From positions 2,790,001-2,854,000 of the forward strand of contig NC_000964.3 of the NCBI RefSeq assembly GCF_000009045.1: DNA of 64,000 bases, in the 5' to 3' direction. The translations under genes and the position numbers were made by a program. Position 1 is the stretch's first letter; the number at the start of each line of letters is the position of its first letter. Below the pieces are notes generated by a model. It made no database searches and was not told the origin of the DNA. It saw nothing but the letters and a program-made list of their open reading frames with translations. This DNA comes from Bacillus subtilis subsp. subtilis str. 168 (GTDB lineage: Bacteria; Bacillota; Bacilli; Bacillales; Bacillaceae). This document shows positions 10,855 to 53,930 of the stretch, in pieces.

Positions 10855-11100
10855 CAAAAAAGCCCTCCCCCTATGCAAACCAACGTTTACACAGGGACGA
10901 GAGCTGTCTCGCGGTACCACCCTGATTACGGGCATTCATGCGCCCGTCACCTTTAACCCTGTAACGCAGGATAAGCGGCAGTGATTAACTGCACTCAGGA
11001 TTAGCTTCCTCCGATCTTCTGATAAAGCTCCTTTCAGCTTATGGAGCTTCTCTCTTTAACAGGGCTTCGGCGTACTCAGATCCGTCACTCGAGATTCGTA
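10855..11100 (-). ncRNA. T-box riboswitch, Ala-specific (specifier GCU)
   Basis: T-box AGGGTGGTACCGCG (10910-10923); terminator with U-tract near 10855-10900; AGAGA and GCTGAAA stem-I motifs; GCU at 11003-11005 followed by A-AUCC. Confidence 0.95.
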
Positions 11101-24407: not shown

Positions 24408-24490
24408 GAACCTCACTCCACATTCGTATTCTGGTTTCATCTATAAAATGGCTGATCCATGAGCAGCCGTTTTTTCTGCGCACAAAAAAT

Positions 24491-24690
24491 AAAGTCCCAA
24501 TAGTGCCGTTGCAGCTTTCCTTTGTTTTGAACCCGCTCTCAGCAGGTGGGTGCCCTCTTTTAAATCTTGTAAGTCCTCTTTACCGAATGAAAAGAGGCAT
24601 GTACGCCATTTAAAAATGCGGGCTCCCAAATCAAAAAAATGTTCGGTCAAAACTAGGTGTACAACTAACACATCAGGACTTTATTTAACT
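24491..24690 (-). ncRNA. bsrA: 6S-1 RNA
   Basis: Ends pair (AAAGTCC.../...GGGACTTT) followed by a U-rich tail; template for the pRNA GUUCGGUCAAAACU at 24641-24654; position between aspS and yrvM as known for B. subtilis 6S-1. Confidence 0.92.
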
Positions 24691-24742: not shown

Positions 24743-26521
24743 TCAGTTCTTAACTTTTTTCTTGATAGAAAGATGAAGCTCGTCAAGCTGGGCGTCGCTT
24801 ACTTCGCCTGGCGCTTCTGTCATCAGGCAGCTTGCACTTGCCGTTTTCGGGAATGCAATCGTATCTCTCAGGTTCGTACGTCCAGCGAGAAGCATAACGA
24901 GACGGTCTAAGCCGAGTGCGATTCCGCCGTGCGGAGGAGCGCCGTATTCAAATGCTTCCAGCAGGAATCCGAACTGTTCAGCCGCTTCTTCTGGTGAGAA
25001 GCCGAGAAGCGCAAACATTTTTTCCTGAATATCCTTTTCGAAAATACGGATTGAACCGCCGCCAAGCTCATAGCCGTTTAAGACGAGGTCATAAGCTTGC
25101 GCTTTCATGTCTTCAGGCGCTGTTTCAATCAGCTCAAGGTCTTCTCGGACAGGCATTGTGAACGGATGGTGCGCTGCGTAAAAACGGCCTTCTTCCGGAT
25201 CATGCTCTAATAGCGGCCAGTCGATGACCCATAAGAAATTGAACAATTTTTCGTCAATCAGTCCGCGTTCTTTCCCAAGCTTTAAGCGCAGGGCGCCGAG
25301 TGATGCGGCCACAACTTCGAATTGATCCGCTCCGAACAGCAGCAAATCACCTTCAGCAGCATCAAGTGCTTCAATCAGCTTAGACTGCTTTTCTTCATCA
25401 AAGAATTTAGCGATCGGGCCTTTCACTCCGTCTGCCTCAACCTTCACCCAGGCAAGCCCTTTTGCCCCGTAGTTTGCAGCAAAAGCGCCAAGAGCGTCGA
25501 TGTCTTTTCTGGAGTAATCGCCGGCACCGCCTTTTACATTGATGGCTTTGACCACGCCGCCGTTTGCTACAGCTGATGAGAACACTTTAAATTCCGTATC
25601 CTTTACAATGTCAGACACATCCGTCAAAAGCATGTCAAAACGCGTATCCGGTTTATCAGACCCGTACTTGTTCATTGCTTCGTCATACGTCATTCGAGGA
25701 AGAGGAAGCTGAAGTTCCTCACCTTTTGTTTCACGCATAACCTTTGCCATCATCTCCTCAGCCAATGACATAATGTCTTCCTGGCTCATAAAGGACATTT
25801 CAATATCAATTTGCGTAAACTCAGGCTGACGGTCCGCACGCAAGTCTTCATCGCGGAAACAGCGGGCAATTTGATAATATCGTTCAATGCCTGATACCAT
25901 CAGAAGCTGTTTAAATAGCTGCGGAGACTGCGGCAGCGCGTAGAACTCACCTTCGTGCACACGGCTCGGCACCAAGTAGTCACGTGCGCCTTCAGGCGTG
26001 CTTCCTGTTAAAATCGGCGTTTCAATATCAAGAAACCCATTTTCATCTAAAAAGCTGCGAACAGCTTTCGTCACGTTATGGCGCAGCTGCATCGTCTGGA
26101 ACATAGCCGGTCTGCGCAAATCTAAGTAACGGTGTTTTAAACGAACGTCCTCTGACACTTCTTCAGCTTGATCAGAAATCGCAAATGGAGGTGTCTTTGC
26201 AGCATTTAATACGTTCACTCCATCAGCATGTATTTCGATCGCGCCTGTTTTCAAATTCGGATTAACTGTTCCCTCTTCACGCGCCACCACTTTTCCTTGA
26301 ATATCAAGCACGTATTCATTTCTGATGCCTTCCGCAATAGCAAGCGCTTCTTTTGACACATCAGGGTTAAAAACGACTTGAACAATGCCCGTACGGTCAC
26401 GCAAGTCAATAAAAATCAATCCGCCGAGGTCTCGTCTTTTTTGGACCCAGCCTTTCAGCGTTACAGATTCGCCAATTGCTTTTTCAGTTATATCACCGCA
26501 ATAATATGTTCTTCCAAACAA
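24743..26521 (-). CDS. aspS: Aspartyl-tRNA synthetase
   Basis: RRDLGG OB-fold, [26 protein letters not shown]; TTG start. Confidence 0.99.
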
Positions 26522-26534
26522 TGCGTTTCACTCC

Positions 26535-27809
26535 TTATCCCTTTTGGTTTGCCTTCATCACATGTATAAATTCATCAAGTGCCACTTCAATCTGTTCGCC
26601 CGTCTGTGCATCCTTTACATTGATTTTGTTTTGGGCAAGCTCATCTTCACCCAAAATCGCAATAAATCTGGCCTTTAAGCGATCAGCTGTTTTAAACTGG
26701 CCTTTCATTTTCTTATTTTCATAATCGATTTCACTGGAAATGCCTGCTTCTCTCAGTTTGTACACCAATGAAACAGAATAATCCTTTGCTTTTTCGCCGA
26801 GTGTGACGATATAGCAGTCGATTCCCTTATCAACAGGCAGCTCTCTTTTTTCAGCATCAATTGCGGCAAGCAAGCGTTCGATGCTCATCGCAAATCCGAT
26901 GCCCGGTGCTTCAGGTCCGCCGATCTGTTCGACAAGCCCGTCGTAGCGTCCGCCGCCGGCAAGTGTCGTAATCGCGCCAAAGCCCTCCGCATTGCTCATA
27001 ATTTCAAATGCGGTGTGGTTGTAATAATCCAGCCCTCTCACAAGGTTCGGATCGATTTCATACGAAATGCCAAGATCATTTAAGTATTGTTTCACTTTTT
27101 CAAAATAAGCGGCTGATTCTTCATTTAAATATGTCAAAATCGAAGGTGCCGATTTCATCAGCTCATGATCACGGTCTTTTTTGCAGTCCAAAATTCTAAG
27201 CGGGTTCGTGTGCAGCCGGGACTGGCAGTCTGAACAAAATTCTTCGATGCGAGGCTCGAAGTGTTTCACGAGCGCTTCTCTGTAGCTTTTGCGGCTATCT
27301 TGATCGCCGAGACTGTTTATGACAAGCTTAACGTTTTCTAAACCTGCTTTTTCATAAATACTCATCGCAAGCGCCATTACTTCAGCGTCGATTGCAGGGT
27401 CTTTCGAACCAATCGCTTCAATTCCAAACTGATAAAACTGGCGGTAACGGCCCGTCTGAGGACGTTCATAACGGAACATCGGCCCGACATAATAAAGCTT
27501 TGTCGGCTGTACAGGATTTGCGAACAGCTTGTTTTCATTAAAAGCGCGAACCGCAGCAGCTGTTCCCTCCGGACGAAGCGTCAGGCTTCTGCCTTTGCGG
27601 TCCTCGAAGGTATACATTTCTTTTTGTACGATATCCGTTGATTCTCCGACGCCTCTGGCAAACAGTTCTGTATGCTCAAAAATCGGTGTGCGGATTTCTT
27701 TATATTGATAAGTGCGGCAAGTGTCTCTCATAATTTGTTCAACAAACTGCCAGCGATCTGATTCTCCAGGCAGAATATCCTGTGTTCCTCTCGGAATGTT
27801 ATATCCCAT
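26535..27809 (-). CDS. hisS: Histidyl-tRNA synthetase
   Basis: LRPEGT, FRYERPQ, RGLDYY, GGGRYD. Confidence 0.99.
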
Positions 27810-27865: not shown

Positions 27866-28150
27866 ATGAAAAAAACTCCCGCCCCTACTATACATGATAG
27901 TAGGGACGAGAGTTATACCCGTGGTGCCACCCTAGTTGGAATACGTTCATATTCCCGCTCGATCCTTTAACGCAGGTTCACGTTCACTGCCTAATGGCGT
28001 TATTCACGCGTTCAGCAGGAAACCTCCGGAGTGTTGTTTCGAGAAAGACGCAATGGGATCCGCTTTCAGCCTGGGGCGGGTTCCTCTCTAATCATGCAAT
28101 CTGACCTACTCTTCTCCATTATTGGTTCAAATCTTTCATCATTTGCTATG
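27866..28150 (-). ncRNA. T-box riboswitch of hisS-aspS
   Basis: T-box AGGGTGGCACCACG (27920-27933); terminator CCCTACTAT/ATAGTAGGG plus U-tract; AGTA/GAA loop-E, AGAGA and GCTGAAA motifs. Confidence 0.95.
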
Positions 28151-28165
28151 TACTCAATTTCTATT

Positions 28166-28194
28166 ATAATAATGGGATTGGGGTTCTCTGTCAA
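28166..28194 (-). promoter_or_regulatory. SigA promoter for hisS-aspS
   Basis: TTGACA-17 nt-TATTAT; the -35 overlaps the yrzK TGA stop. Confidence 0.8.
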
Positions 28195-28361
28195 GCTTTA
28201 TTCCGGTTGTTTTTCCTCAGCGCTGCTTCTTTGGACATAAGACCAAATTCAGATGCTGTTTCCGTAAGATAACCAGTCGTATCGGGATCTGCGTGATCGC
28301 TGTAATGCAGATTCGCTTCACCGTCGTGAAATGCACGTCCCATTTTTGGATGATATTTCAT
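28191..28361 (-). CDS. yrzK: 56-aa hypothetical protein (missing from the ORF track)
   Basis: SD AAAGGTG; [56 protein letters not shown]. Confidence 0.6.
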
Positions 28362-28493
28362 GATTTGCACACCTTTTTGATTGTATTTACGCTTAGTATA
28401 AACAAATCATTTTATTTTTATTTAAAAATCAGAAAGGACTTTACGATATTAAACAAGAATGCTTTTTTAATGATCATCAGAAAGGAGGACACA

Positions 28494-30050
28494 ATGAACA
28501 AGAAATACTTTGTCCTTATTGTATGTATTATTTTCACCTCAGCGCTATTCCCGACCTTTTCATCCGTTACAGCTGCTCAAGGAGAAGCGGTCATCGCAAC
28601 AGATGAAATGAACGTCAGAAGCGGCCCAGGGCTTAGCTACGGCATTACAGCGGAAGTAAAAAAGGGAGAACGCTATCCAATTTTAAAGGAAGATGGAGAC
28701 TGGGTGCAGATACAGCTTGGTTCTGGAGAAAAGGGCTGGGTAGTCTCCTGGCTTATTACAAAGGAAGACCAGGCCAGCACAAGCTCCTCAGGAAGCAGTG
28801 ACACTGTGACATCAACAGACCCCGATCTGCGGATGAGAAGCGGCCCGGGCACTTCCTACGAAGTCATCGGCAAATTCCCGCAAGGCAGCCAAGCATCTGT
28901 CATTGATAAAGATTCGGGCTGGATCAAGATATCCTATCACAGTGCCACCGGATGGGTATCATCTGAATATGTCACATCAGGAGGCAGCAGTTCAGCGTCT
29001 GATGAGAGTGACCAAACCGAGGATTCCGGTGCGTCAACGACGGGCACAGTCGGTGTTTCTTCGCTAAATGTAAGAGCCTCCGCCTCACATGACGCGGCAA
29101 TTATAACAAAACTTGATCGCGGAACGAAACTGACGGTTCTCAACGAGAAAAATGGCTGGGCTCACATTGAGGTGAACGGGCTAAAAGGCTGGGTTGCAAG
29201 CCATTACCTTTTGACTAGTTCTGTTCCAGCTGATGATTCAGCAAATGCCGGCAGTTCATCCTCCGCTAAAAAAGCCTATATCATGTACGGAGGAACGAAT
29301 CTAAGAAGTGATGCGTCAACATCAGCTTCGATCGTTGAGCGCGCTGCCAAAGGAGATTCATACACCATTACCGGTTCAAAGGGAAGCTGGTATGAAATAA
29401 AGCTTGATAACGGGCAGACTGCTTATGTAGCCAATTGGGTGGTCCAAACGTCTAAAAGCGCAGAAGAAGCAGGTGAACCGCCAGTCTCTGATTCCCCGTC
29501 TGGAAACGGCTCTCTAAACAATAAAACGATTATTGTTGACCCGGGACATGGAGGAAAAGACAGCGGAACGATCGGGTATTCGGGGAAATTCGAGAAAAAC
29601 CTGACGATCAAAACGGCAAAACTGCTCGCCAGCAAACTTAGATCGGCTGGAGCGGATGTATATGTGACACGCCAGGATGATACCTTTGTCAGCCTGCAGT
29701 CACGGGTCTCTACCTCTCACTACCGTAACGCTGACGCCTTTATCAGCATTCATTATGACAGCTATGCGGATACCTCTACAAGAGGCAGTACAGCATATTA
29801 CTACAGTCCTGCCAAAGATCAGGAACTCGCATCAGATGTCCACTCAGAAGTGGTGAAGCGTTCTTCCATTCCAGACCGCGGCGTATTATTCGGAGATTAT
29901 TATGTGCTCCGGGAAAACAGACAGCCCGCTATGCTGTACGAGCTGGGATATGTAAGCCATCCGCAGGAAGAAGCCATTGTACATAGCAATTCATACCAAG
30001 AAAAAGTAACAGATGGGATCGAAAGCGGATTAGAGAAATACTTCCAATAA
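28494..30050 (+). CDS. yrvJ: N-acetylmuramoyl-L-alanine amidase: signal peptide, four SH3b domains, Amidase_3
   Basis: Four NVRSGP-like...GWV repeats; DPGHGG, EK, SIHY, YELG Zn/catalytic residues; ATG 28494 with SD AAAGGAGG. Confidence 0.92.
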   Translation: MNKKYFVLIVCIIFTSALFPTFSSVTAAQGEAVIATDEMNVRSGPGLSYGITAEVKKGERYPILKEDGDWVQIQLGSGEKGWVVSWLITKEDQASTSSSGSSDTVTSTDPDLRMRSGPGTSYEVIGKFPQGSQASVIDKDSGWIKISYHSATGWVSSEYVTSGGSSSASDESDQTEDSGASTTGTVGVSSLNVRASASHDAAIITKLDRGTKLTVLNEKNGWAHIEVNGLKGWVASHYLLTSSVPADDSANAGSSSSAKKAYIMYGGTNLRSDASTSASIVERAAKGDSYTITGSKGSWYEIKLDNGQTAYVANWVVQTSKSAEEAGEPPVSDSPSGNGSLNNKTIIVDPGHGGKDSGTIGYSGKFEKNLTIKTAKLLASKLRSAGADVYVTRQDDTFVSLQSRVSTSHYRNADAFISIHYDSYADTSTRGSTAYYYSPAKDQELASDVHSEVVKRSSIPDRGVLFGDYYVLRENRQPAMLYELGYVSHPQEEAIVHSNSYQEKVTDGIESGLEKYFQ

Positions 30051-53828: not shown

Positions 53829-53887
53829 GTTTTCACCTTCTTTTACATTTTCTATGTACACTTTAATGGGAAATGTTCGCTGATGCA

Positions 53888-53924
53888 AAGAAAAAGGCTG
53901 CCGAATATCACTTCCGGCAGCCCT
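53888..53924 (-). terminator. coxA terminator
   Basis: GGCTGCCG...CGGCAGCC then TTTTTCTTT. Confidence 0.8.
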
Positions 53925-53930
53925 TCCTTC

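Follow-up and report, generated by a model that had tools for sequence, protein, structure and literature searches.

A predicted asparagine specifier in the T-box leader of the Bacillus subtilis hisS-aspS operon and its exchange among related Bacillaceae

The hisS-aspS operon and its leader RNA

The window analyzed here is a stretch of 64,000 nucleotides from the chromosome of Bacillus subtilis subsp. subtilis strain 168, in which two aminoacyl-tRNA synthetase genes lie in tandem on the minus strand. The first, hisS (26535..27809), encodes a histidine--tRNA ligase of 424 aa (TIGR00442, 531.6 bits against a cutoff of 286.75) that matches HisS of B. stercoris at 100% identity and its B. tequilensis counterpart at 99%. 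The second, aspS (24743..26521), starts with a TTG at 26521, 14 nt past the hisS stop codon, and encodes a bacterial-type aspartate--tRNA ligase of 592 aa (TIGR00459, 920.7 bits); the score of AspS against TIGR00458, the model of the archaeal-type non-discriminating enzyme, is under the cutoff of that model. The pair is flanked by relA, dtd and a cell-wall amidase gene on one side and by tcdA, rarA and 6S RNA on the other, and aspS lies directly 3' of hisS in all 80 related loci. The 6S RNA (RF00013, 106 bits) maps immediately downstream of aspS, at 24490..24682 on the minus strand, and likewise follows aspS in nine of the ten related loci scanned; the tenth, from Psychrobacillus (L056), has a Bacillaceae-1 RNA in its place (RF01690, 75.6 bits, L056 5684..5750). 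In a B. stercoris locus (L013, 3789..5018) the aspS gene matches residues 1-410 only and has a stop at residue 421, indicating either a broken gene or a draft assembly error. Elsewhere in the window, a weak match to ctRNA_p42d (53885..53927, minus strand, 30.8 bits, under the gathering score) looks like a GC-rich hairpin with a U-run behind it and is probably a mere terminator.

Upstream of hisS, a sigma-A-type promoter-like site occupies 28166..28194 on the minus strand, with TTGACA at 28194..28189, a 17-nt spacer and TATTAT at 28171..28166. The site, a call made purely by consensus match, agrees with the consensus at 11 of 12 positions and stands ∼35 nt 5' of the start of the T-box model. 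A 56-codon ORF (28191..28361, minus strand), for which there was no NCBIfam match, has its 3' end inside the -35 hexamer and also covers the first listed start (GTG 28293) of the amidase ORF (28293..30050), which is divergent and lies on the other strand.

Between this site and hisS, the covariance model RF00230 identifies a complete T-box leader RNA at 27899..28131 on the minus strand, comprising Stem I, Stem II, IIA/B, Stem III and the antiterminator. With 109.7 bits (gathering score 93, E 2.5e-23) over model positions 1-219 of 219, the leader is confirmed as a canonical, well-formed T-box that scores far above chance. The 5' side of the specifier domain (28107..28117) consists of the helix strand GGAG (28117..28114) and the loop strand AAGAGUA (28113..28107), and its 3' side (28028..28040) of GAA (28040..28038), the spacer AC (28037..28036), the triplet AAC (28035..28033), the purine A (28032) and the helix strand CUCC (28031..28028), all read on the minus strand. 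Both halves of the S-turn are therefore present in the Stem I loop, AGUA on the 5' side and GAA on the 3' side, followed by codon, purine and closing helix, and the UGGAG/CUCCG helix is retained in the minimum-energy and centroid folds of Stem I.

The conserved T-box sequence AACUAGGGUGGCACCACGGG lies at 27918..27937 (minus strand), with AGGGUGGCACCACGG at 27933..27919 and the UGGN bulge of the antiterminator as UGGC at 27929..27926; the variable base is C27926, and the predicted partner is a tRNA 3' end of G73-C-C-A. An intrinsic terminator follows at 27867..27914 (minus strand), made up of an 18-bp stem (27914..27874) and a U-tract, with a folding energy of -40.3 kcal/mol (z = -6.5 against shuffles). 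It is the sole terminator-like site of the region, and hisS starts 57 nt past its U-tract. The antiterminator columns of the RF00230 alignment end at 27902, and CUCGUCCCU serves as both the 5' arm of the terminator and the 3' arm of the antiterminator, so that the two structures are mutually exclusive.

The specifier codon in B. subtilis and related leaders

When the leader is aligned to RF00230, AAC comes to stand in the codon columns of the model ('uuc' in GAAa.uucaCC), A28032 in its conserved purine column and CUCC in its four paired columns. The model is blind to the downstream gene, and AAC is placed by alignment alone. The overlapping histidine codon CAC (28033..28031) is set two bases further 3' than the codon columns and ends in C28031, which is paired to G28114. 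The leader thus has the arrangement specific to asparagine, with AAC in the codon columns and a purine behind it, and not the one specific to histidine, which would have CAC in those columns; nor does it present two overlapping codons that are both unpaired in a stacking context, since C28031 and G28114 are paired in the fold and in the model alike. A preliminary description of this DNA, made from the letters and their open reading frames, had placed GGAG, CUCC, GAA-AC-AAC-A, AAC, CAC and UGGC at positions that are all correct on the minus-strand read, and had remarked that the specifier loop is without GAC and that the third base of the overlapping CAC is paired; both remarks hold, and the C28031-G28114 pair is kept in relatives. 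Calling the specifier with the T-box covariance model, as it had suggested, gives the placement on AAC stated above.

The same description had used the alaS leader as an internal control. This leader (10890..11097, minus strand) scores 86.4 bits, under the gathering score of 93, and has GCU on the same codon columns and a UGGU bulge, as A73 of tRNA-Ala requires; the control works as intended. The alaS T-box is missed by a default Rfam scan, and its alignment is without most of the Stem II hairpin (∼14 model columns deleted).

We compared the leader with those of relatives in a one-genome-per-species scan of the Bacillaceae and their neighbors, which gave 80 hisS loci. The set of 80 leaders consists of 79 loci with a parsed specifier domain plus the window, L074 being left out as it is cut at a contig end; 78 leaders were tabulated for the purine, the +2 triplet and the bulge base, and 31 distinct specifier domains were used for pair covariation. 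The layout is shared: behind a 5' helix strand and a loop of 6-7 nt ending in AGUA come GAA and, after 0-2 nt of spacer, a triplet, a purine and the strand that completes the helix. What precedes purine and helix is AAC in 55 leaders, GAC in 21, CAC in 4 and UAC in none (n = 80), and the purine after it is A in 76 of 78 and G in the remaining 2. The gap between GAA and the triplet differs in length among leaders, that between triplet and helix is constant, and the codon is therefore anchored to the helix. Stacking of the specifier on the purine, and of the purine on the helix, requires a fixed codon-helix distance. In eight representatives the Rfam codon columns themselves fall on AAC (Heyndrickxia and Psychrobacillus), on CAC (Lederbergia citri) or on GAC (Geobacillus, Domibacillus, Halobacillus, a Planococcaceae genome and Lederbergia graminis). 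The comparison of specifiers across Bacillus that the preliminary description had called for gives AAC throughout the Bacillus sensu stricto clade.

The pair that closes the specifier loop is G-C in 23 and A-U in 8 of the 31 distinct domains and broken in none, and the other three pairs of the helix change on both sides too. With a closing pair that covaries and stays intact throughout, the last letter of the overlapping CAC is a paired base under selection to remain so. The +2 triplet reads CAC in 55 of the 78 leaders, CAU in 21 and CGU in 2, both from Halobacillus, and the Rfam consensus over all T-boxes is c-a-C at these columns. What looks like a histidine codon in the +2 register is thus composed of the C that ends the specifier codon, the A of the purine position and the pyrimidine with which the helix strand begins, and is uninformative on histidine. 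According to the published description, T-boxes prefer C at the third specifier position.

Two further registers were considered and rejected. The triplet of the -1 frame (CAA, GAA, AGA or GCA) is not conserved in relatives, and that of the +1 frame (ACA/ACG, Thr) is conserved merely as 'AC + purine' and fits neither the bulge base nor the genes.

Several individual leaders deserve mention in their own right. Those of the B. pumilus group (L016, L017 and L018-L027) are clear T-boxes with AAC and UGGC, the one at L017 2188..2427 scoring 99.8 bits, and those of Lederbergia and a relative (L042, L047, L050 and L064) have CAC in the canonical columns together with a UGGC bulge. The distance from the T-box sequence to hisS is ∼394 nt in Alkalihalobacillus macyae (L059) and 337 nt in Fictibacillus phosphorivorans (L080), compared with ∼110-120 nt in the window, which suggests that something has been inserted between leader and gene in these two species.

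The three specifier states were mapped on a tree of concatenated HisS and AspS. AAC, GAC and CAC require at least 5 changes on this tree, against a mean of 22 for shuffled labels. A well-supported clade of 34 species, with the Bacillus subtilis, licheniformis and pumilus groups, Metabacillus and Aeribacillus among its members, has AAC throughout, and CAC has a single origin, nested inside a GAC clade (Lederbergia). It would seem that changes at a single base, the first position of the specifier, have repeatedly given this operon a new target, and that the target has always been a tRNA on which one or other of the encoded synthetases acts, provided that AspRS accepts tRNA-Asn. The missing UAC is weak evidence, given only about five switch events.

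The asparagine annotation of the hisS-aspS leader is already known, and has been part of comparative genomics since at least 2013. Sun et al. (2013, BMC Genomics 14:597; RegPrecise) reported specifier codons for 1134 T-boxes and tabulated the regulons by specificity. Their Additional file 2 lists hisS-aspS under Asn for B. subtilis 168, B. amyloliquefaciens, B. licheniformis, Anoxybacillus flavithermus, B. halodurans, B. clausii, five staphylococci and Macrococcus, and under Asp for Geobacillus kaustophilus, B. cereus, Oceanobacillus, Paenibacillus, C. cellulolyticum, lactococci and lactobacilli; aspS2-gatCAB of C. acetobutylicum and some streptococci is also placed under Asn. The element and the call of this Asn regulog are the same as ours, with AAC in the subtilis, licheniformis and amyloliquefaciens groups and GAC in Geobacillus. 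The table differs from the present analysis in that it is a classification without mechanism or experiment, lists B. pumilus SAFR-032 under neither Asn nor Asp, whereas the B. pumilus leader reaches 99.8 bits with AAC here, and has no CAC (His) members among its hisS-aspS entries, whereas we find them in Lederbergia. The Rfam columns, the covariation of the closing helix, conservation within the clade and the published table together bear out the preliminary choice of AAC over CAC, and we regard AAC (Asn), not CAC (His), as the supported canonical specifier of the hisS-aspS leader.

The antiterminator bulge, the discriminator base and AspRS

The variable base of the bulge is C in 62 of the 78 leaders, A in 14, U in 2 and G in none, and the leaders of L059 (A) and L080 (C) agree with this distribution. 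Bacterial tRNA-His carries a C73 that is paired to G-1, bacterial asparagine identity consists of the anticodon plus G73, and tRNA-Asp and tRNA-Asn have the same determinants except for C36 versus U36 (Giege and Eriani 2023, PMC9976931). A bulge C, or a U by wobble, pairs with G73 and by these general bacterial identity rules fits tRNA-Asn or tRNA-Asp and not tRNA-His, in line with what had been argued for the window in the preliminary description. Neither the window nor any of 54 related loci contains a tRNA gene from which the discriminator could be read directly. The argument is weakened by the practice of the TBDB authors, who deliberately ignore the variable bulge base for His leaders, as the discriminator of tRNA-His can pair within the tRNA.

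It is weakened further by the four Lederbergia leaders with CAC (His), which retain UGGC and indicate that the bulge base partly reflects ancestry. UGGA is found in 13 AAC leaders of the 78, from Psychrobacillus, Paenisporosarcina, Lysinibacillus and Metabacillus (L030), and in addition in L059. Since UGGA pairs with neither G73 nor C73, bulge complementarity is not strictly kept in hisS-aspS leaders. The AAC loci with UGGA are L053, L056, L060, L063, L065, L067, L068, L070, L073, L075, L078, L079, L030 and L059; the GAC leaders of Domibacillus (L034 and L035) have a UGGU bulge.

We also examined AspRS for residues that might accompany the asparagine specifier. The preliminary description had named Leu32 as discriminating-like and Gly84 as typical of non-discriminating enzymes. 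Both residues are present, counted from the TTG at 26521, but Gly84 gains no support as a non-discriminating marker: position 84 is G, A, N, S and others in AAC operons and E, G, Q, N and others in GAC operons. Leu32 is invariant in all 80 AspRS sequences aligned, whatever the specifier. A screen of residues 1-200 in these 80 proteins for a column that separates AAC from GAC operons found none; as no column tracks the specifier class, the protein sequence adds nothing to the asparagine case.

The statement in the same description that B. subtilis AspRS has been reported to charge tRNA-Asn agrees with the literature: the title of Nair et al. 2016 (J Mol Biol 428:618) states that the B. subtilis and B. 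halodurans enzymes keep tRNA-Asn recognition. A 2025 preprint, in the part that cites this paper, describes asnS as non-essential in B. subtilis owing to alternative routes to charged tRNA. Both species of the Nair et al. title stand in the Asn column of the Sun et al. table, a listing that fits the idea that AspRS acts on tRNA-Asn.

The candidate effector and alternative readings

Based on the codon and the bulge, we consider tRNA-Asn to be the probable main effector of the hisS-aspS leader. Transcription would start near 28160 from the sigma-A-type promoter, and the specifier loop of Stem I would present AAC stacked on the conserved A above a helix of 4-5 bp. The tRNA that is read would most likely be tRNA-Asn with anticodon GUU. 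If uncharged, its G73-CCA end could pair with UGGC in the antiterminator bulge and stabilize the antiterminator; with the antiterminator held, the 18-bp terminator (27914..27874) would be blocked and RNA polymerase would read into hisS and aspS. Charged tRNA would not make the second contact, and transcription would end at the U-tract. The regulatory logic would be coherent if the Bacillus AspRS takes tRNA-Asn as well, as Nair et al. 2016 state in their title: the second enzyme encoded in the operon would then act on tRNA-Asn, with hisS as a passenger. The preliminary description had proposed that uncharged tRNA-Asn induces the operon so as to strengthen the AspRS/GatCAB route; for the living cell, both this effector and this purpose are inferred.

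A broader proposal is made more tentatively, as we judge its chance to be not quite even. It holds that in the subtilis clade the sole T-box before hisS reads tRNA-Asn, so that HisRS would be blind to the charging of tRNA-His and tied instead to a back-up substrate of AspRS, and that across the Bacillaceae at least five single-base resets have moved the operon among Asn, Asp and His, never to Tyr. The switching pattern is observed; the uncoupling of hisS from histidine is predicted.

The repeated switching among AAC, GAC and CAC, at least five times in one orthologous operon, could also mean that the first codon base is read in a relaxed manner, in which case the leader would answer both AspRS substrates, tRNA-Asp and tRNA-Asn. 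GAC could bind tRNA-Asn via a G-U pair, AAC would bind tRNA-Asn well and tRNA-Asp weakly via an A-C mismatch, and an A/G toggle would merely shift the balance between the two tRNAs. It speaks for such relaxed reading that tRNA-Asp and tRNA-Asn both have G73 and differ at position 36 only (C36 versus U36), and that partial induction by a near-cognate tRNA has a precedent in the B. cereus lysK leader, which is reported to respond to reduced tRNA-Asn charging (PMC2916919). Related leaders provide a further parallel: Gutierrez-Preciado et al. (2009, MMBR 73:36), as PMC5313534 and PMC4342826 quote them, described a GACAC motif in hisS-aspS leaders and assigned it mainly to tRNA-Asp. The operon, the leader architecture and the position of the pentamer, as far as those quotations describe them, are the same in the window, the difference being that the window has A and not G as the first base and hence a canonical codon for Asn and not for Asp. 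However, an A-C mismatch at the first codon position is a non-standard pair, and the strict conservation of AAC over a deep clade suggests selection for A, not drift, and we therefore think it unlikely that the leader serves both substrates of AspRS in this way.

The quotations of Gutierrez-Preciado et al. (2009) also include the suggestion that alternative structures might sense both tRNA-His and tRNA-Asp. A similar dual specificity, for Asn and His through the overlapping AAC and CAC, had been offered as a fallback in the preliminary description; AACAC does hold a His codon, the first gene is hisS, a His codon (CAC or CAU) occupies the +2 register in 76 of the 78 leaders, and a two-codon T-box is known in Clostridium acetobutylicum. 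However, the loop-closing pair, which covaries from G-C to A-U, always has the third base of CAC as its 3' member, and CAC is followed by a pyrimidine at the place that T-boxes reserve for a purine. Two Halobacillus leaders have CGU in the +2 register, CAU would go against the preference for a third-position C, and the c-a-C of the all-T-box Rfam consensus makes the His codon a by-product of the architecture. A bulge G, moreover, occurs in 0 of 78 leaders, and the real His version, in Lederbergia, has CAC in the canonical columns. We give dual reading of Asn and His only a slim chance, and the fallback is disfavored by the covarying helix, the Halobacillus triplets and the Rfam consensus. The same points hold against a pure tRNA-His sensor that works in a shifted register, as the label 'histidine T-box' implies; hisS as the first gene of the operon speaks for it, but UGGC does not match C73 and hisS-aspS never appears in the His column of Sun et al. 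2013, and we consider a sensor of tRNA-His alone highly improbable.

The preferred reading, with tRNA-Asn as the main effector, bears on how the leader is named and used. Two papers that label it a histidine, or a histidine-and-aspartate, T-box stand against this reading, and the name histidine T-box is routine in work on the model organism and on staphylococci, drug-targeting work included, whereas the sequence points to asparagine. A literature search for an experiment on the tRNA that induces the hisS-aspS leader, with the older T-box literature partly covered, found none, and a full-text search on hisS, T-box and asparagine returned nothing relevant. If tRNA-Asn is the inducer, a shortage of histidine would fail to raise HisRS in these bacteria, the operon would be part of the economy of asparagine and transamidation, and the interpretation of T-box-directed inhibitors, starvation transcriptomes and synthetase-titration experiments would be affected.

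Two known systems resemble the proposed one. The aspS2-gatCAB T-box of C. acetobutylicum, the 'two-codon T-box' (Saad et al. 2012 JBC; 2013 PNAS), likewise is reported to have an AspRS gene under an Asn-reading T-box and to tie the charging of tRNA-Asn to the AspRS route. In contrast to it, the window has the sole housekeeping aspS after hisS, with gatCAB elsewhere, and the second codon is half buried in a helix. In the B. cereus lysK T-box (Foy et al. 2010, PMC2916919), output is also affected by tRNA-Asn charging and the regulated synthetase is not AsnRS; tRNA-Asn is there a near-cognate partial inducer of a Lys leader, whereas the AAC of the window is its exact codon.
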